A stretch of 63,927 nt of DNA, filler included, from Choristocarpus tenellus KU-1152 (taxonomy: Eukaryota > Protista > Phaeophyceae), in assembly GCA_964200185.2 (NCBI GenBank). It is 11 parts of 11 records of this genome, joined end to end, with 100 filler letters (N's around TTAATTAATTAA, not from the genome) between each part and the next. Parts side by side here need not be neighbours in the genome. Positions count along the whole stretch, not along the records: positions 15,785 to 32,072 come from CAXNAD020000847.1; 10 more parts are not named here. One strand, written 5' to 3'. Numbering within the stretch: the first letter of the stretch is position 1; every line of letters starts with the position of its first letter. The notes beneath the pieces were generated by a model. The model did not search any database and was not told where the DNA came from. It saw only the letters and a list, made by a program, of their open reading frames with translations. Positions 10,401-32,072 of this stretch are shown here, in pieces. A program made the translations under genes and the position numbers.

Positions 10401-11338
10401 ATTTGACCAAGACAGTAGAGTAATCCTCTATCATTGACCGAATCTGCAGTACAAGGCCTTGTGGCAGACCTTATCCTTTTTTCAGTTTGGTGCATTCTTT
10501 GATCTTATGTGGAGAAATTAAATTGTTGAAATCAATCACACATTCGAGAAAATGTTGTTTCTTGAAGCAGAGCGGAGATTTTTTAATCACACAGGGATCT
10601 CTTTTTTTTCTTTTTTTTTGGAGGGGGGGGGGGGGGGGGGGGGNNNNNNNNNNNNNNNNNNNNNNNNNNNNNNNNNNNNNNNNNNNNTTAATTAATTAAN
10701 NNNNNNNNNNNNNNNNNNNNNNNNNNNNNNNNNNNNNNNNNNNTGTGCCGCACGCTTAAGACACCCAGTCTCGGGTCTTCCCCCCCCCCCCATCGAGGAA
10801 CTCATCCCCCATTTTTCCTGTTTGTTTTTGTGACACATAGACCGTTTCATCATTTATTGTTTCTAAAGTGAAAAATGTCAGGTGCAAGTTAGTAGGGGGA
10901 GGTGGTTCCCAGAGCAGGGGGGTTGCTCTGGCGTGCATGGTGCTTGTTTATTCAAAAACAAATAAATATCTTAACTGGAACATGATAATGAAGTCTGCCG
11001 TTTACTCCAATAAAGCGTAGTTCCGTTAGGATTGACTCCCTCACCTCAAGCTCAACCGATTGCTGTACAGAGCTTAATAGTTGTGAAACTGAACACTATC
11101 AACAATACACTAGGGCTGAAATAACAGCAATTGGCAAAACGAACCTTTTGTCAAATGTTACACCCTTGGTAACAATGTAAATCGGGCATTATTGGTGTGT
11201 ACTAGTGTTGGTAAAATCAGCGCTAAGCGGGGAGATGGCACTGTTAACTGTCTTGATAGACAGAGTGAGGCTTGCCACCTTCCTTGAAAAGGAAGTAAGG
11301 GAGGTGCTCTGTAGAAAAGGAGAAGAGAAGAACCGTAC

Positions 11339-14300
11339 CTTGTTCATTGAGATACTTTGCTCAAAGCAACGTTGAGCCTCTGATAGCTCACCAAGGTAGA
11401 AGTGGCACATGCCCATGTTATGGCAAGTAACGTGATGCTTGCCACACAACCTAAGGCACACAACACAACCAAGTCACACAATCAATCCAGCCGTGGAGGG
11501 AAGGGGGGGGGGGAAGGAGTAGTGTGTCATCCAGATTAATAGAAGTCTTCTCCAAACAGACCACTGTTCTATCCGAAGGAATGAACCATTCCGACAACAC
11601 AAGTGACAGGTGGGAGTAACAGATCAATGAAACTTCACGAGGAAGTCTTTCATCTGTGTCATAACAGCAACAGGGCTTGAAAAAAGGTGGAAAATGTCAG
11701 ATCATGCAAACAAAGCCACGCCTCAATAGCAGTCTAGGGTTAGCACATGATTGCAGTGCACATCCATGGATTCCTGATCCTGTCTGTAGTTGGTTGAGGG
11801 TGAAAATTACCAACAAATGCTTCATCCAAGGCGACCTATTATTATTTTGCTAGACATAAGGGTGAAATGACTCTTAAACCATTGAGCACCATATCCAGTG
11901 CTATCCAACGGGGTCCTTGACAGCTCACATTAGAGTTGCAGTTAAGTATACATCACAAGGCAGATAGTATGCTGAAGGCACTGCTAAGCGCAGCCTTGAG
12001 TTGAAATCTCAGAAGCACAGGTAGGTCCTGGGCATAGCTGAGCTAGATAGACAATACTTGTCAAGCAACAAACCTCAATATTGTAAAACAAGAACGACTC
12101 AAAGCCACTAGCACAGGTCCCAACAAGCGACAATCAAACACTATAAAATATAAATATATATCGAGCAACCAACAAACACAAAGAGCCTGTGGGGCAACCT
12201 ATCATCATCGTGGGCTCGCCTGCTTGACTGCTGAAAGAGGTGCAGGGCAGCCCCAAAGTCTTTGAGGGCCATCATCAACCTTGCCACCTCAAAGCTCACA
12301 TCCTTCCCCTTAGATTGCATGAGTCAGGATAGATTGAACAATCAGGGTTACGGAGAGAGAACCAGGGGGAATAATAACAAGGACTACGAAAACACCTTAC
12401 TCAGCAAGAGCAACACATCCTTAGATTGCACGGGTCATGGTTGAACAATTCAGGGTACTGATGGAGTGTGCAGAATGGTAGTACAGAAATGTTGTCTACA
12501 GATTATCATGAGGGACTCTGGCATCTTGGGTGGATCACACAAAATCCCGTTCAGATGTTTGGGAGAGAGTGGCATCAGGCCCTTCAGAATGCGTATGGTA
12601 AACCTGTGGCATTTGAGTTTGACTAGGAGCGGTATTATTGTTGAAGTCACGAAATGACTCATACGCTTGTCTGGAATAGACTGAACTGTGAGGAGACCGA
12701 TAACCCAAAGACTGAACTAAGCTCACTTTAAGCATCTTGGGTGCAGCGTGTACGATTCTATACAACACATTTCTTTATACATCTGAGGCTATTGTAACAC
12801 TAGGATCTGTCTGAAAAAAACGCAACTTCTACCATCAACCACTAGGGAGTTCCAATTGAAGGAGGCGACCATCCAACACTGACAACAACAACAAAAAATT
12901 TAAAAGTACCTTTTTGCAATACAAAACACAACAATCAGATCTCTCCTTATTCACACCAACAAGACACAACGCCACCCTCTGACTCGACCACAAAACCCTA
13001 ACCCCAAAACACTGCCCCAATATGCCCGGCAAGTAACTCTAACCCTAACCCTAAACCATATACGGGGAATAGTACTCAGTGTGACGAATTCAAACCATCT
13101 TTTTTTGTAACCCTAACACTAACCCTAACCTGTTGGAGTTGGTACCACTGCCTTGCTACTCCTTCAGCATCGTTCCTCAGGTCTGTACGGGTAGAAGGTG
13201 CAAGGTCTCGGCTGGACACCTGCATCACACAATGTTTAAATGTTTAAATGTTTAAATGGTTAAATCACGCAAACACGGTAAGAAATCGAAAAAAAAACAA
13301 CTACATGATCCGGACAAAAGACCCCTCTACTCCAGGTGGATGCGTGGACGGAATAAAAAGTCGATTCTCCATCAAGGATGCAAATGACAAGCCCCTGGCT
13401 ATGTGGTCCCAAGGCGAGGTTATCGGGAGCTCACATAGTACCCGTGGTTGAGACTCTAACCCTAACCCTAACGAAAACTCAAATACTTGCGATCCCAAAC
13501 CTAACCCTAACCCTAACACATCAGACCACCGGGTGGGCTCAAAGTTCCCATTCAACCCGCTTACTGCCTATTGAGTATCGTGAAAGAGAGAAGTAACACA
13601 CCCGCTAATAGGTTGCTATTTCCATACACAATGTGTAGCATAGCATGCACAGCATAATGACCACTCGCCAATCAAACCCAGCAGATGTCCCACCCACCCT
13701 CCCACCCCCAACTGCGATGTAGGACCCAAACTTTGTGTGCGTGTGCGTGTACTGAAACAAAATACATCCTCCTGGACTCTTTTTACACTCCTTTGGGGCC
13801 AAAACAACACTGCCACAGTAACTGACGCCACTCCATTAATGCACATACTCCTAACTTCACCACGGAGTGTGGAAGGACAGGGAACTGCCACCAGCTGCTG
13901 TGCATATTCAATGCGACTATCAGCTAAAAAAAAATAAATGCTACAACAAAACATTTATTTTTACAACAAAATAAAAACATTAACTCGTACTCCCTCCCCC
14001 CCTCTGTCCCTCCCCTGCCTCCACAATTACAGACCAAGGGAAAAAAAAGAAGAAACATTGACACTACTACAACTCACATGAGAAAAGGACAAGCAATTCG
14101 AATCTAAGACAATAGCTAAAGACAAATACACCCCCTTAACAATCCGTTGAAGTCACCTTTCCCCATCCTCACACCCCCCTCCATAAAACAAATAAACTTA
14201 TCTAATCAAGAGCGTTACATGCTTTCACCTGCTGCACTAGGCTTGACCTGAACTTCATGAAAATGTCAGGGTCTAAATGAGACAATCGCAACAGCCTGAT

Positions 14301-14614: not shown

Positions 14615-15899
14615 TTACATTGGACACATAGAAGAACACAGAGGAAACTAGAGGAAGTACAACCAGTACAACAAAACTTCCGACACATGCAAGCATGCCT
14701 GATATGCAGCAACATGCACGCCTTCCAAGCTCACTGGTCTTCATCGCACTGGCTATCCATACAAGCAGGACACATTGCCAATTTCAATTAGCCCCCTTTC
14801 AATACTTACAAGAAAAATACAAAAAGTGGTACATAAACTTTTCACATCCTTTGCAACAATACATGCACTACTCTGAAGTACTTGGTACCGTGGACGGTCC
14901 AGACTTTTGTATTGTTGGTCACATTCTTTTGTACTGGGGAGAACAGAACAGTCACAAAAGCAAAGGTGACTAAAAAAGGTGACCATGTGCTCATCAGGAG
15001 AATGTAAATTTGAAGAGATGTTTCAGCTATTACAACACCCTTTGTAAGTCCAACCTTTGGATTAGGGTTAGGATTAGGTTTAGGGTTAATTCCCCACCAG
15101 GTAACAGATTACAATATACAAATTGGTTCTATTTATATATATATGTATGTGTACCAGTGGTCCTCTTTTGAAATCAAACGCCGGCGGTGGCATCATTTTC
15201 TGCTCCTCAATTTCAGCCTGATCGCATCAAACTCACACCGGCTATATTCTAGACTTGAGATACAGTATGCAGGCACTAAAAAAAAGGAATCTCCCACAGT
15301 CACAACGTACAAAAAGTACTGCATCGCCTCTTTTCCTCTCTACAAAAACCTTACATCCGTAACTGCCACCAACAGGTTCACAGAGGAAAAACACAGATCA
15401 AGGGACAACAGCTCATGAACGCCATCCTAGTAATACAACAATTTGCATCCTTAACCCAAGGGTATTGAATCCATGACAAACGGGATCCCTTTTTTTTTTT
15501 TTAATCTCTACCGATGATAATTCCCCTTACTGTGTACCAATACTACAAAGTGTAATCTCTCCACACCCCAGACACTTATATCAATAAATTCCCACATTTG
15601 TGTTGCAAACACGACTGTTACACTTATACCAAATAGTACAATCCTCAGCGCCATCAAAAAGAACAGGGTCAAAGTATCTGGGGGNNNNNNNNNNNNNNNN
15701 NNNNNNNNNNNNNNNNNNNNNNNNNNNNTTAATTAATTAANNNNNNNNNNNNNNNNNNNNNNNNNNNNNNNNNNNNNNNNNNNNACGAACGACCAAAGCA
15801 CACCAAAAAGTGAAAATCGAAAAAAGGGTAAAAACGGACGCCGACACCCCCCCCCAGATACTTTGACCCTTACGGGGATCAAGTAGAGGCAGGTAGAAG

Positions 15900-17300
15900 T
15901 AGGCCGTGAGATATGTCGCAAATAAAAGGAGAACCTGAACCAGGTAACAGACATGGGCGCTTCAGCAGATCCAGCAGGAGTGGTACAGAGTGGGGCTGTG
16001 ACTGCGTAACATGGATATACTATTGTTTGGTAGAAGGGTTGAGCTGTGCCAGGAGGTGGTCTGTGCCTAGCTGAGCAAAAATTGGTTACGATATAATCAA
16101 ATACATGTATCTGTGGGGTCTGTATGAAATTGACCTTCAAATTCGTCGATGTGAGATACAGAGGTATCATTGGCAAGGACCCTCCCTCTGTCAGACACAG
16201 TAACAGCTAGTTACGTTCTAGATCAACCATCCCCTCGCTAATGTTCAACTCTGATTGGTTAGAGTACAGGAGGTGAAGAAGGGGAGAATGTTTGACAATA
16301 GCTATAGATACCGATCACCTGGCATCTAGCAATAGTTTCAAATATCTTTGCAGACCACAGGAAACCTATATTAAACCACGGAAGGGCAGTATTTTTGCCG
16401 AGATGGAGTGCACGGTTTTAAATTATTTTATTGTTAGACTAGTGAATGTAGACGACCCCCAAACGAGATTTGCATATGTAGCTTTCTATCTTGTTGCAGA
16501 AGAGAGTCCGTTTTTGGTCAATGCCATGCCCTCAAAATCATACGACAGCATTCACTTTTGTACCATCCTACATGCCAAGGACAAGTAAAGTTCGAGGGAG
16601 GAGCTGGAGTGACGAGAGGTGGAAGTGCAGGATCCTACGCGCTAGAGTAAGGCAAGAATGGACCCAAAACGATTACATGTAATGCAACAACAGTCAATAT
16701 TTTAGACTAGAAGTAGGGTGTTGTATGAGAAGTAGTGCTGAGTGTAATACCTCTGACCATGGGTTGGGATAATCCCGAGGCTAGTTTGTCTTCTTGAAGA
16801 TGCACAGATTGTAGAAGAGGACTTAACTTTGGTTGAAACCATGCCACACAAAGCAATAGATGTTTGTCGTTCCCAGTGCAATGAGGGCTCTCACAAAGTA
16901 GCAGAAAGTGGGTTTGAAGTTATCGTACTAAGGAAACCATTTTTTTTTGGCAACCTAGATACCTCCTGCCACTCAGGATGGACAACTTTGAGGTTGTCGT
17001 TTAAGGCTATGTGGGCACATGGGGGTAAGGGCTTCCCTTCATCAGATCTGGTGCGTGAAAGACATGGTAGGTTGGAGCAAACAGATCAAGAGACTGAGGT
17101 AGGATTGCGTGGCCTACACTCCATTTATGCTGTTGTGTTAGTATCGATGTCTCAAACATTTGTGAAGATGATGCTTTGTCCTTTCCTGAGTGTCCCTGAC
17201 AACAATATCCTCTTGAGTGCAAGGTTCCAGCGGTTCGCATTGCAACTCTATTCATCATAGTTTGTCAAAGCAGAATTTTAACTGAGGAGAGTATTACATG
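15900..17300 (-). mobile_element. Decayed Ty1/Copia RT-RNaseH remnant
   Basis: Minus-strand fragments in Copia order: LFAP, GFNQS, LQRYLK, SRT*LAVTVS, LLDLLKRP. Heavily interrupted. Confidence 0.4.
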
Positions 17301-18520
17301 CACTCAGAATAACATTTTGCTGTATTACTGTGGAGTGATGATCCTATCACGTACTACCGTGTTTCAGTTCCAATGACAATAATGGAACTACTGTCCACTT
17401 TCTGTGGCCAGGATGGGTTACTGCAGTTTGCAATGCTGGAGTGGGTACCGGTTTGGGACTGTACCGGGGGAGAGAGAGGAGTGGAAGACCTAACAGTTAG
17501 TACACACACTACTGTGCACTAGCAGCCCCAGAAGGTAAGGGGTGGTGAAGGGGTTGTACTTATGTTGACTTGTGGGGGCTGTAGTGAGCGGGAAAGAGAA
17601 GGAGAACAAACCACCACAGTCCTGAACAACAGCAAGAGGAAAGGTACTGGTGGGGACTATGTGGTCTGTGACTGGGGAAAAATAGGAGAAACTCCAGTAG
17701 CCATCCACAGCACTCTAGCAGTGTCAGGACGAATGACACAACAGTGTGGTACTGTGCCTGGGTAGCAGGGATATAGTATTGTTATTGTTGTTGGTCATAC
17801 TCTGCATTCTTTAGTTTGGGTGGTGAGGTTTAATAATATATCAGAGAGGGTTATACTGTGCGCCCGTTTGGTTGCACAATCCTTTGTACTTGAATCAAAT
17901 ACATCACGTCATTATCCGCCACTTGTGATGCAGTCCAGCAACTCCTAAGTTACTCATTATCCTGTATTTCATGCAATTACCCAACTAGTCAGTAGTTCCT
18001 TCTGTAAATAGTATGTTCAAACACCTACACGTTCCTCGAGACAATCACTTATTGAGTCTTCGCATGAACTTACACCATCTCTTCATTATTCACCTCATTA
18101 TTTGCTACTCATAGCACAGTGCTGCAACCCCCTAGCTTGTGCAATATTTCCCTATTAAAATAAAATGTACACAGAGAGAAATATTAAAGTACATTACAGC
18201 AAGCCATAGACAGGCACATGCAGTCACCCATCATTTGTGAGCTGCCTATTTCTAGTTTTATTTTCGATTTAAGCCAAATCCCTTACTATGTATGGTACAC
18301 ACCAGCACGACCATTGTCAACTGTGATTGCTACGGGAGGTCTGGTGCAATTATGTGAAGCTCATCCATGTCGTGAAGTTCACGGCAAATATTCCAGATAT
18401 CATGCACTCTGTTTTGCGCGCAAAATTCTGGATTAATTAATAAATTTCCTGCTCCTCTTTTCTTTCACTCCTTACCATTTCCCACGTCACTCTCCACCAC
18501 CTTGAGTATCACTCCTTACT

Positions 18521-18700
18521 GACCCAAAGTATCTGGGGGGGGGGGGTGGTCTACACCAGAGTGTCCATTTAGACCCAAACCAGGAAATGTGAACTTTCAT
18601 TTATCCATCCAATGTATTGAACCAAGTCACCCAAAAATCGCGATAAGAAAAAATTGTCCCCAAATGGACAGCCACCACCCCCCCCCAGATACTCTGACCC
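18521..18700. mobile_element. MITE family A, complete copy (180 bp)
   Basis: Termini GACCCAAAGTATCTGGGGGG / CCCCCCAGATACTCTGACCC, flanked by ACT on both sides. Internal sequence shared with the other family A copies. Confidence 0.85.
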
Positions 18701-18861
18701 ACTATTCCAACGACATTTCACCATCTCCTTTTTCCACCCACCCCTAAACCTAGTGTTTCCAACCACACGACCAACCCATGCTGCCATCAGCATATCCATT
18801 TTCCAAAACATCGCAGCCATCCACATGTTCGCTCCGCTCCAAATTCGTCCACACCACACTC

Positions 18862-19010
18862 TGTTACAAAGCGCTCAGCAAGTTTATTACTACTGTGATG
18901 GGATATGTAGCTCCAATCCACAAGCCTGTAAGGTGAAGACAAGGCTCGTAAAGGACTCCATAAAGGATGAGTCATCAAATATGCTGGATTTTTCACTTCG
19001 ACTCACGTGA
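18862..19010 (+). mobile_element. Partial LTR, same family as 19211-19514
   Basis: Starts TGTTACA. Shares GGATATGTAGCTCCAAT...AGGACTCC...TCAAATATGCTGGAT..TCACTT with the reverse complement of 19385-19490. Confidence 0.6.
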
Positions 19011-19210
19011 TTGGTTTCATTGGGGTATAAATATAAGACTGAACAACCATGCATGGCGTAATGTATGGTCTCATAATTACTGAATAATATACATTAACCG
19101 TCTTCAGCTACTCAAAGACACTTGAAGCATTGGAGTTTATTTCCCTTGTAGAAGTGGATTTATCGTCCAGGAAGCTTTGGGCAACCCCCCCCCGGGGTCA
19201 AAAGGCAGAC

Positions 19211-19514
19211 TGTTACAGGCGATTTGTCTTGATGGCGGTTTCATAAACACCATTATGACCTTGAAGTCCTAGATTTTATATATTTGTACTTCTTGACCAT
19301 TTATTTATTTTTCGTCATTGTGGTTCCCGATTACGATAAGACATCGTAGACCAGTTCCTTTTTATGCGATGATATTGATATTATCCAAGTGAGAGATCCA
19401 GCATATTTGAGGACTTGTGCATCAGGAGTCCTATACGTGCATCAGTATCATCTATAGGCCCATATATTGGAGCTATACATCCTGTGGAGGTGAGTTCAGG
19501 GGTGTGCTGTAACA
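19211..19514 (-). mobile_element. Solo LTR (304 bp)
   Basis: TGTTACA...TGTAACA inverted termini with a perfect 4-bp duplication AGAC on both sides. Both ends match the insertion at 47789-48270. Confidence 0.75.
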
Positions 19515-20179
19515 AGACTGGACCTGCTGCAGAGTTTTTGCTTTGTAGTCGTGCAGTATAGGAGGGGGCTAAGGGGGTCCATTTGTTATGCACCTGACCT
19601 TGACTGCATCTCTTCATCCCTCCCTCCTCTACTAAGGGAAAAATAGTATCACGGTGGTGCAGTAAACATGGGAGATCCTCTGTTTTTGGGAGGTCTCACT
19701 GTCTTTGGAGAAGGGAAAGTTCAAGTAATCTGAGTTTTGTGGGCGGAAGAATTCTGGTTAGTTGGGGGCACAGGGGAAGGGAAGGAACAGAGAGAAGAAT
19801 AAGAATGAGTGAGAAGGGAACGAAGACTAAAGTACTGAGTGGCTAGGAGAGGGAGGAGAGAAGTTAAAGAAATGAGTGGTAGGAGGAGACACAAGGGGAG
19901 AAGGAGTGGTCAACATTGAAAAGATTGCTGAGGGCAAATGGTACAAGATGAGGAGGGTGAGAATATGACAACCTCTAACTCTCCCACCTACCCGCCCTGT
20001 TGCTTGCTCATGACCGATAGGGATGCGGGGAGGGAGAGGAGGTCAAGTTCGGGCGGGGTAGACGTCTTCTAGCTCCTAGGCATGACATGAAGTGGATGAT
20101 GAAGGGGTGTTCTTATATGATTGTGAAGTGGTGTTGAGTGGAGTGGTAACTTGTGTGGGGTTGAAGGTTGGGGGGGGGT

Positions 20180-20395
20180 GACTGGAAATCAGTGATGAAG
20201 GGGTTTTGCCCTGGTTGGTCATCAGATGCGGGGGGTAACTGTAAACCAGTGGTGAAGGGGTTTTGCCCTGGTTGGTCATCAGAGGTAGGCGTTGGCTGGA
20301 AAGCAGTAGTGGTCAAAGGAGTTCGCATTTGTTGGTCATTGCAAAGGGGGGGGAGGATGGCAAAGCAGTGGTGAAGAGTTCGCACTGGGTGGTCT
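20180..20395. repeat. Degenerate tandem repeat, period about 57 bp, about 4 units
   Basis: Recurring AGTGxTGAAGGGGTTTTGCCCTGGTTGGTCATC. The minus frame gives a repeated DDQPGQNPF peptide. Confidence 0.75.
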
Positions 20396-21198
20396 TAAGT
20401 GGGGTTACAATGGGAAGGAAAAGGGAAATGGTTGGATTGCAAACAGAGAATTAAAATAATAATCCAGAATTCGTGAGCAAAACAAACCTCCACGATTGTC
20501 ATACTTTCTTCACTTCAGGTTATTTTTCACACACAGGTTAGGGTTAAGGATGGGGTTAGGGTCAAGGTTAGGGTTTTAGTTAGATTCTCAGGAATGAGTG
20601 TGAAAAAAGTGATAAGGTAGTGGATCCTTAAGAGTTGTTTTTTCCATCTAGGCTAATCACTCATTCGCAATAACCTTTATAATCAATTTTTCTAAAATTC
20701 TCCATGATTGAGATTATTTATCATCATTCAAGAATGAAAGATTTACAACTCAAATAATTTCATTCATTCATGGAACTTCAGAATTGGAATATTAATACAA
20801 ATATATACAACTGACGGTATTTTATTTTCGATTCTGGAAATTCTAAAATAGAATTCGCAAAAAAAAGGAAATGATAACAAATTACTGAGAACTTTAATCT
20901 TTTTCTTGGACATAGTAGGAAGATGTTCATAAAATATGTACAAATTCCAAATCGGATTTGAAGTCAGAATGAGAAAAGTTTAAGAAGAAAACATGGGGAG
21001 AAGGAGTTTTTGGCATGTGTTTCTCCCATGCAATCATGGTAGAATTCTACCCCATTGTTCGCAATAATAGAAGTGTGCTAATTTGACGACTCAGTCATCA
21101 GCCCCGCCCTCCTCAAAATCATTTTATCTAACCACATTTCAGCAATTCTTTTATTGGGTCGCATACCAGAGTAGGTGCGAAGCAGACCGAGAAGTTCC

Positions 21199-24100
21199 AT
21201 GAATCGCTTCTCTTGGAACCACGTGGCTGTGGCAGCAGTTGCGGTGACAGCAACCTTTGGCCTCTATTCGCCAGTCCAGGGAGAGGTTGTTGTCAACCTG
21301 CAGCCGTGTATCATATCTGTTGGGGAACTGGTATGTAGATGTGAAGAAATACGATAGACGACATTCCCTTGGCCATCCGCATTTTTTTTGTCGAACCTGG
21401 TGTTCGGCAAAACTGTATGAGTTGATCCGTTCGTATCTACCACAAACTCCACATAGACCGATGTCAATAGATGACGCGGAAATGCTGAAGGATTGATAGG
21501 TCTTCTTGCTTGCCATGCTTTATCCATTGCGTGGGAGACTTGCCCTCTTTCACGACGCTTGATCCCTCCTTGACCTCACCAGATTCCAGACGTTGGGAAT
21601 GTCTCAGAGTCTTACATTCTCTCGGAGTGGTACAAGGGATTTTGGTCTGCTTCCCAGGTGGGTTACTGGGTATGGGTTACATTCTCTCGGATGCACAGCC
21701 TTTCATAGGAGCCCCACTAAACCAACTCCTCAACTCTCTTGCCTTGTCTCATTGCTCGCATTAATTTAGGTGTCGATAATCAACCCTACAGGAGCATTGG
21801 GCTTGACCAACTCTGACGGGTCCGGGATGTGCGACACCATCTATGTTGGTGTGGCTCCGACTGCTGATCAAAAGACGGAGCTTCAGGACTACTCTAAGAA
21901 TTTCAGGGTAAGTTTGAAATTGATCAGCATTTGTTTTCCAGCGATGTCTAGTGGACGTACAGAGAGAGTGATGGTGCTTGAGTCGTATTCTCGGAACACG
22001 CTCGAACAAATGCGCTCATGCCCCGATGAAAATCGAGCCACATTTGTCAATCTCCTCATTAGCAGCCCTCAAAATACCACACTGATCTTTGTAGGTCAGG
22101 ATTGTGTACTTCGACAATGCCGAAGCGGCGAACGATGCTGAGGTGCAAGGGAGACTGAAGATTAGCCAATACTGGAGCGAACCTCTCTACTCCGAAACGA
22201 CTCCCATCCCTGAGGGGATCAGGTTGACCAGTGAGTGATAACACCGGGAAAAATTTTAGGGAAATCCACTGCACAGCAGTTAAAGGCTTCATGAAAGCCA
22301 AATGCAATGTGTGACTATGTAAGCTTGAGTATGTCATATTGAAGGCTAAGTAATACCGAGTGACGAAATTGAGACCCGATTCTTACGTGCTTACTAGCAG
22401 TAGCATCAGCACAACCACGACCATATTGGTTTGGAGACAATGCCAATCCTTCTTTCAAAACTCGGAATATCTCTTACTTGTTTCTGTGCACATTCTCTGG
22501 ACCCAACTTGTTTTCCTCCGTGCAGCTGCAGGGGAGGCAGACTCACGAGTGTCTCCAGCCAACATGGAGACCAATCCCCAGACACTCAACATTTATACCA
22601 GACCAGTGATCCAATGGGGAACGACTTTTGAGAATGGAGCGGCAACTATTATGTCATCGTAAGAGTTTCACATCATCGCATGGTGATGCTGCTCTTGACT
22701 GCAGTGCAAAGCAGTGTGCCGTTTGGCTCTTACGACCTTCGTTGATTTCTTTGTTTAATTCTTTTTTTTGTCATCTACATCCTTGCCACTATTGACTACA
22801 TTAGCAAGATTGAAACTCTGAATTTGAAGAGGGACCTAACATGCAGAAATTAAGAAGGTGCTGTTGCTGATGTGATTTTACCTCCACCAGCGGCTGCCGC
22901 AGTACAGATGTTCGTTCTGTTCCGTGCATATTTTCCCATGGGTCAACAGGTAGCAGTATCCACACAGTATCTGGTGCGAACCAGTGCCCCTGTTTTGTCA
23001 CATTGAATGCGGTGAACGCGAAATTTTGTGAATGTTAATTCGAGCATCTACGCGTTATATCTGCTCTTCCTTTAGCATCATAGTGTGTTTTGGCAGCAAG
23101 AATCCCCAATCTACTTCAGTCTTACGCATTTGAGTGTGTTTATGGTACACTCATCTACCTCTGCATGTTTCCTTTATCAATATTTGTATGCTCAGAGAAG
23201 CTACTCACTTCTACTCCTATTTTATAACCTTCATCTATTCAACTAGCATCAAATGATACGCACGTCTTCCTCATATTGATCCCTGTTCCATACAACCGTA
23301 TGACAGCTACGTGGATTCAGATGGCAACCTAATGGAGGTCACAAGTGGTGAAAGTACATACCCTTCGGCAGCCGCAGTGGAGTGGATCGGTACAGATGGA
23401 CTGGAGGAGCTTTACTTTTTTCACACAATGGCCTGGTTTGACATGGGCTCATGGGCTTGGGCAAACTATGTCACTGACTGGGCCACCCGGGGAGTATTTC
23501 AGGTGAAGGAAGTATTGACATAAAAGGTTTTGTGTGATGAGTGAGAAATATCTGACTTGGGTTACCCTGTACATTATAGCACAAAAAGAGGCGCGCGTTT
23601 TTTGTTGGCATTCCCATCAAAAAAAGCTGTAAGGCCTTTTGCCTAACCACAGCATTGTGTAAAGGGAGTTAGGGCTCATACCATGGAGAATTTTTACTTT
23701 CTGTGATGTCTGCCCTGCCTCACTTCGATCCAGTAACATACCTAACAACTCCCACACTATTTTATTGGTGTGCTGTTGCTGCAACGTGGGGAAAACTGCC
23801 TCTAGGGTGAGAGACGCTACTACCTTGGTCCTGTTGTGGATGACTTGCTACTGGGTACAAACGTATTTGAGTACAATGGTGACACCAATGAAGGAACTGT
23901 AAGTGTCAAGAGTACTTGTGCTTGTCGAGAACGGTGTGGTGAAAGAAGGGAAGTTTTAAAGTGAAATGCGGTCAAGTGAGCCAAAGTAAACTGTCTGATA
24001 CACAAGCATGGACTGATAAGAAATCAAAATCCAATCATTTTTGCTGATTGCTGTCCTTGTACCCAGTTTTCGTTTTCTTTGTCCCTTAATTGTTACTATC

Positions 24101-27100
24101 AGCGGGAACTTGCCACAGTTGTGACTGATTATGTTTGTCAAGTACCTTTATTAGAGTTACTGTCATAAATATTCATATTAAATGTTGCACTCACAACTGT
24201 CTGCCGCAGTGGAAGGGTGGTGTGTCAAATATTTGACAATATAACGCCTTTGGTCTCCTCCTGCATACACAGTTTTCTCAAATCACTTATAGTCAATATT
24301 TTTACTTGTCATGTGGAGGTAACCTCTTCTTTAGACATATTTACCAAGCCATGATACCATGTCGTACAGGATAGCTAGCCTCTAATACGTGCATTTACTG
24401 CTGTGTTAATGAATTTACCAGGAATACAGGATGTCAGGGACCGACATGGAGACCTTCGCTGCCTTCCAAGACTCTCTGAACACCCAATATGGCTCTGATG
24501 TATTCGTTGACTTTGCCTACAATGGCAACGGTATTCTCACGAAGGTGATCTAAGAATTGCGTTATCCTAAAGTTGTTTAGAAATGCCTGTCAATATTCTC
24601 TCCAAGACAATTCGGCTCACATCCCTCTCTGAACAAGCAGTTATATAGTCGAAAAAAAATGTATTAGTGGCCATGTTGAAGCAGCTAATTATCCATCATG
24701 CTGACATGTGATGTGCAGGTGAACTCTCCCTTTACCCTGACATTTGATGATGCTGACATCGCACTCCGAGCAAAGGGTGTAAAGGTTGATCCTCCCGGTG
24801 AGCAACGTTCTCCTTCCCAACTCTGGCAATTTTCAAGTATCGAAGAGAAAGCTTTATCCGATCACCGAGTTACTCTCAGGCAAAAATATTTCATTTTTTT
24901 GCATTTACACCTCTAAAGTAAGTGATAGGTATACTTGGTATGAAACACTCACCTGCTCATTGCTGTGAAATAGTAAAATAAAGTAACTTCCTATTATTTG
25001 GTCTTCACATATATATGAGGTGGAAGGATAGAAGGGTGAAAAAATGCTCTGTATAAGATCCTGGTCGTAACTGTGTTAGTGCAACTGGACCCCCAGGTTT
25101 TTGTAGGTCTTGCCATGTATATTAAATATTGACATGCGCTCTATGCACTATTTTGTGGTAGGCATCGACAACGTTCATGACTCCACCTGGCTGACAACTG
25201 GCATTCCTGGAATGACTGAGGAGTATGCTGCTGGTAGCTGGGTTTCAGATGATCTTCTAGCTTCAATTCTCACCACAGATATCAAAGAAAAGTTCCATTG
25301 GCAGTCACACACCATGTCTCACCTTGCCAGAGACGCCCTCGGCTTGTCAGACTGCACTATTGAGGATAAGGGTGAGAGGCAATATATCGTTATGGGCTGA
25401 ACAAAGCCAGGCTCAATATGTACGCAGAGAGTGGCACCTTGGTGTTGGTCAGTCAGGGTATTTCCAATTTACTTCTCCACAAATTTGTATGCCTCTCTTA
25501 TCTCTTCTAATGCTATAGGTTGTCCATTGTAACTTGGGCATTTTTTCCAAGCTTGGGATAGCTTAATTCTTCAAGGATATTTATTAATTATTTTCTGAGC
25601 GATATACTTACCAGTCCGATTTTTCGTCTCTCGATTATGTTATTTATCTTCTTCAAAATAGCCAACATTGGAATTGCCCAGCTGTTGGACTTCTACTATG
25701 GCAATGAGAATTTCAACTGGTATTCCATGACCTCCCCTGGCATCACTGGTCTCTTCAACGAGTACTGCCTCACGTGAGTTGATATTGCAGCTCCTGAATC
25801 TCGAGGATTTCAACCAGATTAAATCCAAATCACTCGTTCATCTTCATGTCTGTCTTGCTTTTCTTCGTTTATTTTTTCTTAATAGTGCATCTCTGCTTGT
25901 TCGCAAGATGTATTGATCAAGGTCTCTTACCCAAACTACTGAAACAGCAACTTGTTTTAGGGGTGTGACTATTGTCTGGTTTGGGCCCACCATGTTTGCA
26001 AGCAAAAACTCTCTTCCCTAGAGCTGGTGTTACTGCATAAGTACTCCTTGGTTGTACCAGATCCATTTCACCTGCAGCAGATTGAACCTGAAGCATTTTC
26101 TTGCGTCAAGATCACACACACACACACCTTACTGCACGTTTTCTGTATGACTATTTTAGGAGTGGTGCCAACTCACTTATGACATGCTACCCCGGTGACA
26201 ACACGTACCTGCCGGGCATCACCAATGTCTCCCTTGTCGCTGACAATCGCTACCATCCACTGACGACCACTGTTGACACAAATGGTGAGCCTAAATGTCT
26301 AATTATGTGAACTTATGGGCAAGGAATCTGACCTTGGACAGCTGACCATGAACAGCTTCCACTTGTGGGCATGGGTTATCGATTGTCTTTCTAAGTCTCT
26401 GCATTTTGTTGGTTGAATTCCCAGGAAAGAAGAATGGTAGAAAACAATACCCTCATGACATCTCAATCTGCCCGTGGAGACTGGGCCTAATCAATAGAGT
26501 CTGAGACTTGTCAATAGGGTAATGTGTACTTTTTTTGTGACGCCATACCCCAATGTACATCCGATACGAGGGGTAGTCTCCGAGTGCAATTGCCATCACA
26601 AGAGTGTCAGTTTGAAATCAAAATACTATTTTATCAACTACCTGACATTTTTTTTTAATTATAGCACTCTCCTTGTGTTGTACTGCTTGCCATTCCTCTT
26701 AGGATATGATGGCGCTACAATTGTGCCCCGCTTTGCCACATTTGTCTACTACAACTGTGTCACTCCAGAGGTAAGAGAGGCATCCCTTCCTATACAGCAT
26801 TTTCTACCTTATTCTGTTCTGTTCTAGGGCGCAATTTATCCCTCCACAACCATTTCTTGTAGCAAAGGATGTGTAGCTGGTGACATGCTTGAGTCCTGGG
26901 TGTAAGAAGGATTAAAAAAATTGAGTTTGTACAGGTTGGAGTGCTTTTGATTTCAATAGAGTTCGTATGTTGGGTCTCGTTAAGGTTTGTTAGCTGGGTT
27001 TGGGTTTGTCACCTGTTGTTGCTCTGTTGTCTGTAGGATGTGGGCTTTCACTAGAGTGGCATGGCTTGCAAGAAATGGCATGTCCTGTATTGTAGTGAGA

Positions 27101-29722
27101 GAATGCTTATGATGCTGAATTATAATCAAGATTAGTGTCTGAGTGTTCTGCATTATGTGATCACCAACAAAAAAACATTTTTGTTCTTTGTTTGTGGTGG
27201 ACACATCGTTCTAACCTTTCTGATATGTCTTTCAATTCTTTCTGTGGCCACGCTTACTCTCTGTGGCCTTCAAACAAAATCTGCAGTGCCTCATCAATGA
27301 GAATGAGTATATTAGGCGTGTTGTCTGTGGATGCGACAACTTGGACCCGTCCAACTCTGACACTGGGGTGAGTTCAATATTTTCATTTTCAGAATATTTA
27401 ATTTTCTTGTAATTAGAGGAGCTGCAGCGGTTGCACTGCCACGTGCCTTGCTCACAACTGTATCTTTATCACGTAATTCATACCTCCAAGAAGGGTGACG
27501 ACCATTTGCATGCATGCATTACTGCCCCTCTTGAGGAGGACAAAGTTCCATTGCATATATTAAAACGTTTTGACTGCTGATTCAAACAACTTGTACAACT
27601 AGTGACAAGCAAAATGCCATTATATTTTCTAGGTGTGCCCAGCCTGTGATGGTGATATTCAGTCCTTTGGTTCACTGGATGACCTCATTGCCTGGGAGCA
27701 GGAGGCCACAACGAGGCAGATTCTTGGGGGTTATCGTGACAAGTACATGTTCCACCAGGTGTGTGCTCCTGTTTTGATTCAATCTGTCCCAAGGTTTCAT
27801 CAGGTATGACGACCTAACCTTTTGATGTAAAGCCGCTGTTTATTACTATTGCTATTCTTGATGATTATTTCATACAATTATGTATATGCCTTGTCATTCA
27901 ATCCAACGATTACCCTCTCACATATTATCCTAATGTTCACTGCTTGGAAGGTGAACTTGGTACCTACCACCATTAATGGAGTAACATCGTCTCTCCTACA
28001 GTACTGGATGGAGGAAATGATGGCTAAACTTACATTGTTTATCAAGCTTCCCATCAAAGTAAGGCTCAAATTATCTGGGGGTGGGGTGGCGGCTGTCCAT
28101 TTGAGGCCCATTGTTACATGTCACGATTTTTGGGTGATTTGATTACATGCGTTGGATGGATAATGTAAGTGTACTTTTCCTGATATTTCCCCTTATGTTC
28201 TTCCCACCTTTGAATAAAGCCTGAGTTCATGGTGTAATTACACTTAGCTGGTAGTACCACTAGGTATGCTCTTCTTGTTAATGGGTTTTTTCATTCAACT
28301 CTAGACTACGTTATTGCCCTGTGCCTGTATGGATGGTGTTTGTGATGTTTTCAGACCCTTAAGTTTGACCACCTCTGCGAGAACTTCAACTGGCATGAGG
28401 CACTGGACAACGCTGCTCCTCTTCTGAAGGCCACCAAGGACACAACGACAGGTGAGGGTTAGGTTCTACATGACTCTTCACCTTGCTTTTGCTGCCCACA
28501 CTGGTCCAGAAACTCCTTCAGTTCACTTTGAAACTCCAATTTGTATTTGTGTAATTGTGGCAACTCTTGTTTTGTTTTGCTTGTTTTTCTGAGTACTATA
28601 TGAGAGGACAGTGCCTGGTAGACCCTTCCTGATGGAGACCATCATCTGGTGGTTTAAATGTATGTGCCCCATTACAGAAACTGAAACCGGGTTATGCACC
28701 GTCTCACCAGCACATTCACGTTTATCTTAACAGGTGCTGTTACCAGTGTCCAAATATCTTCTGGAAGCTACGGGTACATTCCCTTAACCATTCCAGATGG
28801 CATGACTGTAAGTGTTGCCGTCTCTTTTCTATTTGCAATGCCATTATCATGAGTTATTGCACTTTTTCTTAAGAATGTGTGACTGTTGAGCTGATGGCAT
28901 AGTTGTGCATCCTGTGTCTGTCAATCTTCTCCTGCTGCAACTTTGCAGGTGGACATTTCTAGCTTTGCAGGGTCTGAAGACGTGACCTACGGCACAGACA
29001 GGACATATTACCTTGCCACAGATACCTCCCTTATGCTGACCTACAAGGGTGAACCCGAACCTCCTCTGTGAGTCGTTCTGCATAGGGGGATGGTTTCCGG
29101 AAGGTGTATTCAACTTGAACCTATTGACTCTAGCAGTAGTACTATGACGGTGTCATTTGTCATTACTTGTTAGGCCTAGGGGTGGAAGTGGACCTGGGAA
29201 CAAGAAAATTCTCAGTTTTTCATTGATTTGATTTTGTTGAACAAAATCATACAAATAATTGTTTGCCTTGTCATAACAGTGGCCAACACAAAAGATAAAA
29301 TGTAGATATTTAGGTTGATAAATTCTGATAGCAAAACCTTTGTGCTTTTCCCTGTAGTAAGACACATTGTTGGTCCGTTTTCCTCCAAAAAAGCGCAGTG
29401 TTCATAGAGCTACACCAAGTTTATTTACCACTGGTCATTACCTACTCCCTGATCCTCCTCCTGCAGTCCCACGCCATCGCCCACACCAGTTCCAACTTCC
29501 TCCATAGTCATGCCTACGCTGACTCCATCAACAGTGACAAAGACTGAAGCACCTGGGGCTGCACCTACCCTCAGCCCTGTAGATGGAGACTGGGATGGAG
29601 GACGTGATTGGGGTAGTAAGGGTGGTAGCAAGGATAAGGAAAGGAATGCTGGAAAGAAGTTTTGGGGGAGTGAGGTGGGTAATGGTAGAAATCAGGCTAA
29701 CGGTAGAGGTGGAGGTGGGTAA
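21199..29722 (+). CDS. agd3: Secreted Agd3-like (carbohydrate esterase family CE18) polysaccharide N-deacetylase; complete 20-exon gene, about 826 aa
   Basis: Exons, all GT-AG and phase-consistent: 21199-21330, 21583-21657, 21770-21907, 22095-22230, 22526-22658, 23307-23502, 23806-23898, 24422-24544, 24719-24797, 25162-25371, 25662-25773, 26160-26284, 26703-26770, 27287-27367, 27633-27758, 27951-28058, 28355-28451, 28734-28807, 28949-29067, 29467-29722 (sum 2481 nt). The N-terminus MNRFSWNHVAVAAVAVTATFGLYSPVQG is signal-peptide-like. Motifs in Agd3 order: DWATRGVFQGERRYYLGPVVDD, AYNGNG, QSHTMSH, SPGITGLFN, GDNT, YHPLTTTVDTNGYDG, VPRFATFVYYNC, DKYMFHQVNL, SLLQYWME, LPIKTLKFD. The symbol denotes homology, not proven orthology. 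Confidence 0.88.
28063..28184. mobile_element. MITE family A, partial copy in intron 16 of the Agd3-like gene
   Basis: GGCTCAAATTATCTGGGG...GGCTGTCCATTTG...TTGGATGGATAATGTAAGTGTACTTTTCCTG is the reverse orientation of family A. The other end is missing. Confidence 0.8.
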
Positions 29723-30200
29723 TGGTAGAAATCGTGCTAACGGTATAAACGGTTCTAATAGTGGAAATGGTTCTGGTAAGAATTGAAAATTTGGCTGGTG
29801 CACATATTTCCCACTTACAGTTGATAAGACTTGCTTGCCTGAAGACTATGCCCGCTTTTTTTGCTACAGCAAAATTCCCGTCCAAAATTCTGTACTGTGG
29901 TTGTGGTTGTATACATACATGTATGTGTGTGTGTATGTGTTTTGTGTCGAAATTTTCTTGCGAAGCTTTTATTGAGAAGAACAAGAGGTCTAAATTGATC
30001 TTGCGTGATGAATGCAATGAGGATAGTTGAATGCAACCGACTGCCTTGGCTGTTGGCCCCTGCCTTTTCTATGTCTTTTCCGTCTTTTTTGGTTTAGTGA
30101 GTTGTTTTTCCTGTTTACTCTCATTGTTGCGCATAATTCGTTTGGACTGTGTGACAATATGGGAGGAGCAACACTGTATTAATTTAAATTCTCAGGATTT

Positions 30201-30547
30201 TTGAATGCCTAGGTTGCTGTCCATGGGAACTTTTATTGTTCAATAATTATTAAGCAAATTATTTCCTATTATGACATGTGTGCCATGATCTTCCTCGTGT
30301 CTCGCACACAATTGTAAAGGCACACATACATAAACTAAGTGTATCCATTTCCTTCTTGTGTGAAAGGTGTTCACCATGGATGATGATGATCAAGGATTGA
30401 ATGCCTAGGTTGCTGTCCATGGGAAATTTTGTTGTTCAATAATTATTAAGCAGATTATATCGTATTAGATTGACATTAGTGCCATGATCTTCCTCGTGTC
30501 TCGCACACAATTGTAAAGGCACACATACATAGACTAAGCGTATCCAT
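30201..30547. repeat. Direct duplication of about 150 bp (30201-30347 and 30397-30547)
   Basis: Both copies read TTGAATGCCTAGGTTGCTGTCCATGGGAA...GTGCCATGATCTTCCTCGTGTCTCGCACACAATTGTAAAGGCACACATACAT. Confidence 0.9.
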
Positions 30548-31049
30548 CTATTTTTCATTTTCCTCATAGAGCACATAGGAGGAGTTTGAACTGAAGTAGG
30601 CAACAGCCTAGAAAGTACACTGAGTACATGCTTTAGTAACTTGAAGCATGAAGCCGGACCTGAGAGTATTGCTATTTCTTGTACCCAACAACTAGTGCTC
30701 AGCCTCCACCACATCATCAAGCAATCTCCCTGGGTTTATCACCTTAATTATTTTTGATGACTTGGGCGGTACTTTAACACAATATATTGAACCTTAGGTT
30801 TCTAACCCATCATTTCATCATGTCCTCACATGGAGATGAGATTCTACCTGACCCTGTCAAGGGCCCATCTGTTCAAGAATTCTGGCAGCTTATGGTGTGA
30901 CGGTAGCAGATCTGTCAAAAAGCATTGGCAATCTCATGTTGCAGTCTAATAGAGTCAGTGACGGAAATCATCCCGCCATCCAGGCTGCTGTGCCCAGCAC
31001 ACGGCTTCCGGCTGGGCATTTTTACCAGTCGAAATGGGTCCGATGGAAC

Positions 31050-32072
31050 ACATGTTGACGGAAAATTTCCCAGAGAGGGGAAACAGTTCGGATGCTGTGA
31101 GTTTCAGAAGTGGGGCGAGCCGGAGGTTCGGTTCTTAGATGTTTGGGGTCAGGCGCACATATTGTTCACCCTAAGGGGTCAAGGGCTCAGCCACCAAAAT
31201 TATTGGACAACTCGGACTACCGTGACTGGCGGAGGCGTTTCATCGTGCTTGTCGATATGCCCACTGCCTGGGTGCGTTGACAAGTGAAAGATCAGTTAAC
31301 CAAGAACGCTCATGAGCCAAAGTATCTTAGAGGGTAGAGCCGCGTCCATTTGGGGGCCAAAATCCAATGTTCCGAATTTGATGTAATTTTGGCTATCATC
31401 TTTGTTAGGAAGTGCCAATATCCTTGTTGCGGACACACCTTTTCATAACGTACACATTTTACCTACTTGGAAATATTTTGGAGTAGGAAAATGAGATAAA
31501 ACCCCCCGAGGGAAGTCAAGCCCCAAATGGACAAAAAGGGAAAACTCGTACCCTCTAAGATACTTTTACTCTCATACGAGGAACTTCTCTCTTGGATGGG
31601 TTCAGTGCGAATGATATCTGGATGGCCGAAGAGGCTTACAATGCATTTACTGTTGCTCCTGTCGCACCCACCACCAGGGCTCTGTGCTATACGCAACAAA
31701 GCCTGAGCGAGCTTTTCCGAGCATTAGATGATTGGTTCATGCCTATTACAGTGGGTAATAGCCGACATTTGTTCCGTGAGTTCTTCTCTTCGAAGGTGGA
31801 GAAGGGGGCGAATCCACTCCTGACCTTCACCCAATTGGAGGAGCTACGGGGGAGGATGCTATCGATGGACCTGGTCATCTTGGACAAGCTGCTGCTCCTA
31901 CATTTTCCGCGTGCACTCGGATCAGATTACGATACTGAGACACACATGATGGCCTTACAGAGGACACTATGTCGAGCAGACATAGAGAAGGTAGTCCGAG
32001 AGCGATATGTTAAATTATCCCCAAAATCATCAAAGAGGATAAAGGTGATAAACCCTTCGAGATTGCTTGATG
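31050..32072 (+). mobile_element. Ty1/Copia gag remnant interrupted by a MITE and truncated by the contig end
   Basis: ORF 31592-32072 ...LFREFFSSKVEKGANPLLTFTQLEELRGRMLSMDLVILDKLLLLHFPRALGSDYDTE... fits a UBN2/Retrotran_gag_2-type pattern. No introns, unlike the host genes. The left boundary is approximate. Confidence 0.7.
31314..31571. mobile_element. MITE family B, complete copy (258 bp)
   Basis: GAGCCAAAGTATCTTAGAGGGTA ... TACCCTCTAAGATACTTTTACTC, with a perfect 4-bp TSD TCAT. Confidence 0.9.

Follow-up and report, generated by a model that had tools for sequence, protein, structure and literature searches.

A complete, intron-rich gene lies at positions 21199-29722, on the + strand, of a 63,927-nucleotide stretch of DNA from the brown alga Choristocarpus tenellus KU-1152 (assembly GCA_964200185.2), hereafter the window; the piece under analysis is 15785-32072 of that whole stretch. 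The best overall explanation, to which we give a probability of about 0.7, is that this is a resident brown-algal gene of carbohydrate esterase (CE) family CE18 that encodes a secreted deacetylase of the type of Aspergillus fumigatus Agd3, a family whose fungal enzyme deacetylates an adhesive galactosamine polymer. That it is a real and intact CE18-family gene of a brown alga is virtually certain, and it is highly probable that its product is an extracellular polysaccharide deacetylase. The locus is intact and resident in the nuclear genome of an early-branching brown alga, in all likelihood C. tenellus itself or a close relative within the Discosporangiales.

Full-length brown-algal homologues, compared with the piece by tblastn, matched about 20 collinear coding blocks. 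Frame-preserving GT/GC..AG pairs were enumerated, and splice sites were chosen among them by the residue spacing of the homologues. The resulting model has 20 exons and 19 introns of 112-648 nt, all GT-AG, and its 2481-nt coding sequence specifies a protein of 826 aa, the sole stop codon being the terminal one (29720-29722). An earlier first-pass annotation of the window had proposed 20 exons encoding about 826 aa without a stop, and the model agrees with it exactly. The GC content is 50.5% in exons versus 41.0% in introns; the piece as a whole ranges from 39 to 48% and holds no long bacterial-type open reading frames (ORFs), as expected of an intron-rich eukaryote. The protein starts MNRFSW..., and its only hydrophobic stretch, aa 8-26, resembles a signal peptide, in keeping with the first-pass description of the start. 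No second membrane segment was found in the 826 aa, which contain 12 Cys residues, two N-x-S/T sites and an 85-residue C-terminal tail, rich first in P/T/S and then in G/K/R/N. The predicted splice junctions are supported by conservation rather than by reads. A single apparent joint in DNA contigs, from 26127 to 28083, ends in a high-copy repeat with 21 nt on one side and was rejected as a true splice joint.

The closest full-length relative of the window protein is P0084 of Discosporangium mesarthrocarpum, with 55% identity across residues 1-779. Its annotated gene (L001) also has 20 exons, and the exon chain could be rebuilt exactly from the protein. In a joint alignment, all 19 intron positions and phases are common to the window model and the Discosporangium gene, either in the same column or one to two columns off at gaps, and 10 exons are identical in length. 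This agreement with an annotated gene provides independent support for the window model. Intron positions are also shared with three Choristocarpus paralogues wherever these are covered, and 14-15 of 17 are in common with the distant Ectocarpus paralogue P0086. As introns are common to such deep paralogues, the exon-intron structure predates the divergence of the paralogue subfamilies. The brown-algal paralogues of the Discosporangiales (P0084 of Discosporangium, CAM9308757.1 and CAM9244706.1 of Choristocarpus) resemble the window protein in sequence (55-66% identity), in intron positions and phases, and in domain order.

Membership in the CE18 family was assessed by sequence and by profile. 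When a single exon (25164-25370, 69 aa) was compared by phmmer with a set of 1.84 billion cluster representatives, 71 matches were obtained; the full-length ones were brown-algal proteins from Choristocarpus tenellus, Pylaiella, Scytosiphon, Hapterophycus and Ectocarpus, all of which bear the Pfam domain PF25115 (Agd3_CE) with E values of 1e-40 to 1e-50. The window protein is 55-66% identical to the Agd3_CE proteins of Discosporangium and Choristocarpus, which score 154-170 bits on PF25115. In an exon-by-exon scan, four window exons matched this profile collinearly, with a sum of 81.5 bits: exon 8 (24422-24544, aa 302-342; profile positions 21-62, 24.9 bits, E 1.2e-5), exon 13 (positions 234-255, 22.9 bits), exon 15 (positions 268-298, 18.2 bits) and exon 16 (27951-28058, aa 610-645, also placed by homology; positions 307-340, 15.5 bits). 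The Choristocarpus protein P0002 aligns with the Agd3 crystal sequence 6NWZ at an E value of 3.2e-33, pairing VVDD with QIDD, SHTMSH with SHTFTH, PRFAT with PRWAT, and YMFHQAN with YMFHQAN. The single catalytic exon had no match among PDB sequences, being too short, and full-length P0002 was used in its place.

In Agd3, D377 is the catalytic base, D378, H510 and H514 form the metal triad, an Arg lies in motif CM3, and H668 is the acid (PMC7229062). The window counterparts, assigned by motif and alignment, are D282, D283, H418, H422, R527 and H608; all are kept, and the catalytic positions are near-invariant across an alignment of 40 family members. The Asp-Asp pair of CM1 is found as VVDD (23833-23844) in exon 7 (23806-23898, aa 271-301), with D282 (23839-23841) as base and D283 (23842-23844) as metal ligand, roles taken from PMC7229062. 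The HxxxH of CM2 lies in SHTMSH (25305-25322) in exon 10 (25162-25371, aa 369-438; motif and homology), where the metal ligands H418 (25308-25310) and H422 (25320-25322) fall 135 residues past D283; CE18 expects more than 120 after CM1. The CM3 Arg, R527 (26729-26731), is part of PRFAT (26726-26740) in exon 13 (26703-26770, aa 518-540), which also encodes VYYNC (26744-26758), and the CM4 His, H608 (27753-27755), the counterpart of the catalytic acid, is part of YMFHQ (27744-27758) in exon 15 (27633-27758, aa 568-609). Two further motifs, PGITGL (25736-25753) and GDNT (26194-26205), lie in exon 11 (25662-25773, aa 439-475) and exon 12 (26160-26284, aa 476-517), both placed by motif, homology and frame. 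Every motif listed in the first-pass annotation was therefore recovered on the + strand in collinear order, and its statement that the Agd3/CE18 catalytic residues are intact holds for the Asp pair, HxxxH, the CM3 Arg and the CM4 His alike. In addition, residue W344 of the Agd3 carbohydrate-binding module (CBM) domain CBM87 has a conserved counterpart in W248 (23434-23436), within MAWFD in exon 6 (23307-23502, aa 205-270; homology and alignment).

The fold was predicted for P0084, which stands proxy for the window protein (55% identical, same exon structure), with a 40-member alignment. The model has a mean predicted local distance difference test (pLDDT) score of 83.2 and a predicted template-modelling score (pTM) of 0.83, and is ordered over residues 21-743; residues 744-833 have a pLDDT below 50 and are predicted to be disordered, matching the tail of the window protein. 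A Foldseek search of the PDB ranked 6NWZ first (E 3.6e-39, target-normalised TM 0.81). The superposition on Agd3 that the first-pass annotation had suggested as a check was made with this homologue, and VIA-align placed model residues 24-723 on Agd3 142-792 with Z 43.3 and an rmsd of 2.7 Å over 609 residues, a span that takes in the CBM87, CE and C-terminal domains (domain limits from PMC7229062), so that the match covers all three. The next-best structures were human NDST1 (Z 22.8) and then CE4 enzymes (Z 13-15). In the ESM Atlas, the nearest clusters were Agd3_CE families of fungi and bacteria, in agreement with the PDB result. By this modelling, the window protein is predicted to have the three-domain Agd3 build, namely a CBM87-like alpha/beta/alpha domain, a distorted (beta/alpha)7 deacetylase domain and a C-terminal beta-sandwich.

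Likeness to Agd3 (CE18 plus CBM87; 6NWZ; PMC7229062) thus extends to the three-domain build, all four catalytic motifs, the W344 counterpart and, as predicted here, secretion. In contrast, sequence identity between Agd3 and the algal proteins is only about 22-30%, the algal N- and C-terminal domains are not recognised by Pfam, and the algal protein lacks the Ser/Thr-rich region present at the fungal N terminus and has instead a Pro/Thr and Gly/Lys tail at its C terminus. Human NDST1 (8CCY, 9F6Z) superposes on the P0084 model through its N-terminal and deacetylase domains over 431 residues, but with 13% identity and a Z far below that of Agd3; the window protein has no sulfotransferase domain, and Pfam gave zero matches to PF12062 (HSNSD) in the algal proteins. 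The CE4 and Pel deacetylases (PelA of family CE21; Bacillus cereus PelA-DA) share a metal-dependent NodB-type core and an Asp/His/His triad, and the Pel enzymes likewise act on alpha-1,4-linked N-acetylgalactosamine (GalNAc) (PMC13254593). They differ from the window protein in that its CM1-CM2 spacing and insertion are typical of CE18, it has no MT4 Asp (PMC7229062), and their structural scores are far lower. That the N-terminal and deacetylase regions of NDST1 came best after Agd3 suggests that Agd3-type and NDST-type enzymes share a two-domain ancestor. Signals of both PF25115 and PF12062 are present in P0123 and in some bacterial clusters.

The remaining exons were placed by homology and, except where other grounds are given, by frame. 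Exon 1 (21199-21330, aa 1-44) holds the start codon, the signal-peptide-like segment and the onset of the mature protein, and its intron position is as in P0084 and P0086; for exon 2 (21583-21657, aa 45-69), frame and the intron alignment served as well. Exon 3 (21770-21907, aa 70-115) falls in the N-terminal alpha/beta/alpha (CBM87-like) domain according to the homologue structure comparison, and is followed by exon 4 (22095-22230, aa 116-160) and exon 5 (22526-22658, aa 161-204). Exon 9 (24719-24797, aa 343-368) precedes the CM2 exon, exon 14 (27287-27367, aa 541-567) encodes a Cys-rich loop, and exon 17 (28355-28451, aa 646-677) reaches the end of the CE domain. The predicted C-terminal beta-sandwich is encoded by exons 18 (28734-28807, aa 678-702) and 19 (28949-29067, aa 703-741), assigned with the aid of the same structure comparison. 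Exon 20 (29467-29722, aa 742-826 and the stop) encodes a Pro/Thr/Ser-rich linker and then a Gly/Lys/Arg/Asn-rich tail, the homologue counterpart of which is predicted to be disordered.

Several observations bear on whether the gene is resident in the algal genome. The trees show the window protein nested among three paralogues from C. tenellus (SH-aLRT 97), inside a Discosporangiales clade (100). Non-coding segments of the piece (15790-15871, 20037-20147, 28080-28182 and 31314-31573) match the C. tenellus contigs L002-L004 at 72-89%, several copies of these shared repeats sit in introns of C. tenellus paralogues, and the GC content of L002-L004, 0.42-0.44, is the same as that of the window. 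Taken together, the shared dispersed repeats, the matching GC content and the tree place the piece in C. tenellus or a very close relative and exclude fungal or bacterial contamination. These results bear out the first-pass supposition that the host is a brown alga or a relative and its proposal that the gene is resident; the shared introns and the depth of DNA coverage point the same way. Positions 23200-29199 are covered by contigs of two DNA runs from one organism with zero differences and flat depths of about 20 and 5, except at 28000-28199, where the summed contig depths reach 12470 and 3714 and loose ends occur at 28062/3 and 28182/4. This exception marks a dispersed repeat of about 120 nt and very high copy number in intron 16 (28063-28182, no strand assigned), 4 nt past the donor site. 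Further copies were found at 18581-18700 (inverted), at 15832-15873 and on C. tenellus contig L003; neither the repeat nor the flanks gave a tRNA or Rfam match. The first-pass annotation had spoken of 19 introns containing the host's own miniature inverted-repeat transposable element (MITE). The repeat is real, high-copy and the host's, but only intron 16 holds a recognisable copy, and the MITE label was not confirmed, since high copy number is seen while neither terminal inverted repeats nor target-site duplications were shown.

The window gene belongs to a multigene family that turned up in all brown algae inspected. Two word-indexed searches found Agd3_CE proteins in Choristocarpus, Discosporangium, Sphacelaria, several species of Ectocarpus, Pylaiella, Scytosiphon, Hapterophycus, Undaria and Cladosiphon, thus in the orders Discosporangiales, Sphacelariales, Ectocarpales and Laminariales, usually with several genes per genome. 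The source genome has at least four paralogues, counting the window gene, which is distinct and absent among the database proteins returned. In one Ectocarpales subfamily an N-terminal WSC domain, absent from the window protein, is joined to the Agd3-like body, and some members have extensin-type repeats (PF02095); these fusions suggest the cell wall as the site of action. The members of this subfamily observed were P0055, P0090, P0091, P0093, P0095, P0098-P0100 and P0108-P0110, P0110 having extensin-type repeats only. Sequences matching window exon 2 occur at L002:2033-2075 and L004:2670-2716, upstream of the annotated paralogue starts (L002 4234, L004 3485). Given these upstream matches, and since P0001 and P0002 begin at window residues 174 and 136, the public Choristocarpus models look N-terminally truncated.

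The Agd3 paper reported homologues solely in fungi and bacteria (PMC7229062). Our full-text literature searches returned no paper that links Agd3 or CE18 with brown algae, Phaeophyceae, Ectocarpus or algae in a relevant sense, and the main texts of the brown-algal CAZyme survey (PMC11468063) and the Phaeoexplorer preprint (10.1101/2024.02.19.579948) make no mention of CE18 or of a deacetylase. In UniRef, members from Ectocarpus already bear one of two automatic names, 'Agd3 deacetylase domain-containing protein' and 'WSC domain-containing protein'. The family is therefore present in databases and undiscussed in the literature searched. The first-pass annotation had held that prior characterisation of the family in the lineage would remove the novelty; this applies by half, since a multigene family with some automatically named members exists across brown algae in the databases but not in the literature searched.

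The nearest non-algal relatives found were fungal, at 24-30% identity; with these as outgroup, a single long-stemmed clade (support 100) unites all the sequences from brown algae and the related ones from the environment. A scan of genome contigs with three peptide patterns found no bacterial relatives, a weak negative, as the ESM Atlas lists bacterial Agd3_CE clusters. Within the brown-algal clade, the tree places two sets of intronless environmental sequences among the host subfamilies. One of these (P0132/P0076, P0136, P0075 and P0039) lies on marine contigs of 17-62 kb together with giant-virus core genes (Pox_VLTF3, Pox_A22 resolvase, D5_N+DUF5906 primase-helicase and SWIB, and also DUF5767 and DUF5759), and IMG/VR classes three such contigs as viral. 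Directly downstream of the viral Agd3-like gene is a hybrid histidine kinase; hybrid kinases are a hallmark of the phaeoviruses of brown algae. The viral Agd3_CE genes (contigs L005-L014, for example L005:10001-12547) encode full-length proteins of 763-848 aa. They belong to the same family as the window gene, with about 43-47% identity to P0084 (P0132, P0136) and 43-44% to the window protein (cluster representatives P0075 and P0076), but are intronless, set amid viral core genes and have a GC content of 0.39. The viral group has as its sister a host subfamily whose genes are rich in introns (that for P0086 spans 10 kb). As the host introns predate the subfamilies and the viral genes have none, capture of the gene by a virus from its host appears the simpler reading of these sequences, although the deep nodes have only modest support (80-87). 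The sole transfer signal that we observed links brown algae and giant viruses.

If the analogy with Agd3 holds, the enzyme would be secreted and would bind a polysaccharide chain in the groove between its CBM-like and CE domains. A metal-activated water would attack the acetamido carbonyl, with D282 acting as base and H608 as acid, so that an N-acetyl-hexosamine would be converted into a cationic amine. The most likely substrate would be alpha-1,4-GalNAc, as in galactosaminogalactan (GAG), and the expected effect would be an altered charge and adhesiveness of an algal extracellular matrix polymer. De-N-acetylation of this GalNAc type on the alga's own polymer is a tentative proposal, which by analogy we place at even odds or slightly below. 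GalNAc specificity is proposed by analogy, with support from the lineage's genes of glycoside hydrolase (GH) family GH114, from its GH135-like genes and from the kept W344 counterpart. GH114 is the family of the endo-alpha-1,4-galactosaminidase Ega3; the CAZyme survey counts it among the GH families with most members in brown algae, at about five genes per genome (PMC11468063), and the Phaeoexplorer preprint (10.1101/2024.02.19.579948) lists it as markedly amplified. Spherulin4/GH135-like proteins were found in Ectocarpus, Cladosiphon and Nemacystus, among them CBJ32333.1 ('Spherulin-4') of Ectocarpus siliculosus. The copy in Ectocarpus sp. 12 extends over 5 kb for 379 aa and stands beside a TM231 gene, which indicates an intron-bearing host gene. 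On the metagenome scaffold L015 (65.7 kb), a Spherulin4 gene (4804-5709; PF12138, Sph3/GH135 family, E 1.9e-29), whose closest named relatives are brown-algal at 63-68% identity, lies 4.3 kb upstream of an Agd3-like gene (10001-13721) that is in three pieces (10040-11425, 11505-11714 and 13134-13721). The 1.4-kb gap in the latter, the opposite strand of which carries an HNH endonuclease ORF, looks like a mobile intron or insert. Of the five gene families that make up the fungal GAG cluster, brown algae, judged from their sequences, appear to possess three (CE18, GH114 and GH135-like). The glycosyltransferase family GT4 is large in brown algae (PMC11468063), yet it is not specific to GAG synthase. 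By analogy, a galactosaminogalactan-like polymer in brown algae is plausible.

Not all observations favour a resident, secreted Agd3-type deacetylase acting on such a polymer. Each of the four window exons taken alone falls below the Pfam cut-off of 27.6 bits for PF25115. The CBM87 (PF25116) and Agd3_C (PF25117) domains were undetected by Pfam in the algal proteins and emerge from structure comparison alone, and Agd3 W292 aligns to a non-aromatic residue, an aromatic one standing two positions further on. Unlike the fungal GAG genes, the window gene is not clustered with synthase, epimerase and hydrolases: neither a GAG-type neighbour nor a co-located cluster of uge3, gtb3, agd3, ega3 (GH114) and sph3 (GH135) was found in the available flanks, 5.4 kb upstream and 2.3 kb downstream on a short contig. 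Nor did a synthase of the Gtb3 or PelF type come to light, no search aimed at one having been made. Current brown-algal wall models list no galactosamine polymer (PMC12223506). Agd3 is the sole characterised CE18 enzyme (PMC7229062, PMC13254593), and transfer of its substrate to the algal protein is weak because it starts from this one enzyme at about 28% identity. One alternative is that the same fold serves another substrate, either by O-deacetylation of the alga's acetylated matrix glycans (e.g., fucose-containing sulfated polysaccharides) or by NDST-like de-N-acetylation of a GlcNAc chain. The related CE4 superfamily includes both N- and O-deacetylases. The NDST1 deacetylase region is the second-best structure (Foldseek E 3e-13), and the unclear conservation at W292 and the wall models, in which a galactosamine (GalN) polymer is undescribed, would fit this alternative too. 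We nevertheless consider it unlikely, since Agd3 is much the closer structure (Z 43.3 versus 22.8), the four catalytic motifs and the W344 counterpart are kept, and the known substrates of the families to which the brown-algal GH114 and GH135-like genes belong are GalN/GalNAc polymers; a PF12062 match is also missing from the algal proteins. It is quite improbable that the enzyme instead targets foreign polymers, such as Pel- or GAG-like exopolysaccharides made by bacteria or fungi that live on the algal surface, in control of the surface microbiome or in defence. The predicted secretion is compatible with such a role, as are the use of GH114 and GH135 elsewhere as biofilm-disrupting hydrolases (PMC7229062, PMC10485009) and the lack of a known algal synthase. 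However, deacetylation raises adhesiveness in the known system (PMC7229062). The family is also ancient and large, and in some paralogues it is joined to wall-type WSC and extensin modules, as would fit the alga's own matrix; that giant viruses in the same clade carry the gene suggests that it acts on a structure of the host.

The status of the gene itself is far less in doubt. A fungal or bacterial contaminant would not be expected to encode a protein 55-66% identical to brown-algal proteins, as against 24-30% to fungal ones, or to share intron structure and repeats with brown-algal contigs, while a dead pseudogene is contradicted by a frame open across 20 exons, canonical splice sites and the retention of all catalytic residues. 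Giant viruses of the kind described above integrate into brown-algal genomes, and intronless homologues do stand amid giant-virus core genes on metagenome and IMG/VR contigs, so that the gene could in principle be part of an endogenous viral insertion. Against this, it has 19 spliceosomal introns at positions common to host genes of other brown algae, no viral genes were seen in its flanks, its depth is single-copy and uniform, and its protein groups with the host Discosporangiales genes, outside the viral clade. The contaminant, pseudogene and viral-insert readings were thus rejected on introns, repeats, depth, tree and open frame, and we regard both contamination or gene death and viral insertion as scarcely credible.

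The flanks of the gene contain further repeats and no neighbour that can be named; ten long flank ORFs matched no Pfam family. The C. tenellus assembly is reported to be highly fragmented, with an N50 of 6.6 kb (PMC11468063), in keeping with a piece of 16 kb. Segment 31314-31573 is a dispersed repeat of about 260 nt. The C. tenellus contigs L002 and L004 bear five copies of it (72-85%), and three of these fall within the spans of annotated paralogue genes. Downstream of the gene, a unit of about 197 nt is tandemly duplicated at 30201-30547 (copies 92-95% identical). A 65-nt inverted repeat (30715-30779 and 32008-32072; 82%) may represent transposon ends; 1228 nt separate its arms, and the second arm is truncated where the piece stops. 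An ORF in this span stays open from 31559 up to the edge (171 aa) and matched no Pfam family. Upstream, 19285-20784 is strongly G-skewed (GC skew 0.35-0.40), a 57-nt tandem repeat occupies 20173-20286, and part of the skewed stretch (20037-20147) recurs on C. tenellus contig L004.

The window provides a full-length gene model where the public models of Choristocarpus paralogues appear truncated. Beyond this, models of brown-algal walls comprise cellulose, alginate and fucose-containing sulfated polysaccharides, each of them neutral or anionic, and for GH114, reported to be unexpectedly large and amplified in brown algae, a substrate has not been proposed, a question to which the CE18 and GH135-like genes offer a testable answer. 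We propose, as a speculative and on balance rather doubtful hypothesis, that brown algae make and tailor a hitherto unrecognised, partly de-N-acetylated, galactosamine-rich (GAG- or Pel-like) cationic exopolysaccharide with a lineage-wide toolkit of CE18, GH114 and GH135-like enzymes, and that giant viruses of these algae captured the deacetylase, together with a GH135-like gene on one scaffold, to remodel this polymer during infection. The presence of the same gene in giant viruses opens the question of how viruses alter the host surface. If the hypothesis is true, a cationic GalNAc/GalN polymer could serve in the adhesion of spores and zygotes, in the cross-linking of alginate and fucans, and in control of the surface microbiome.

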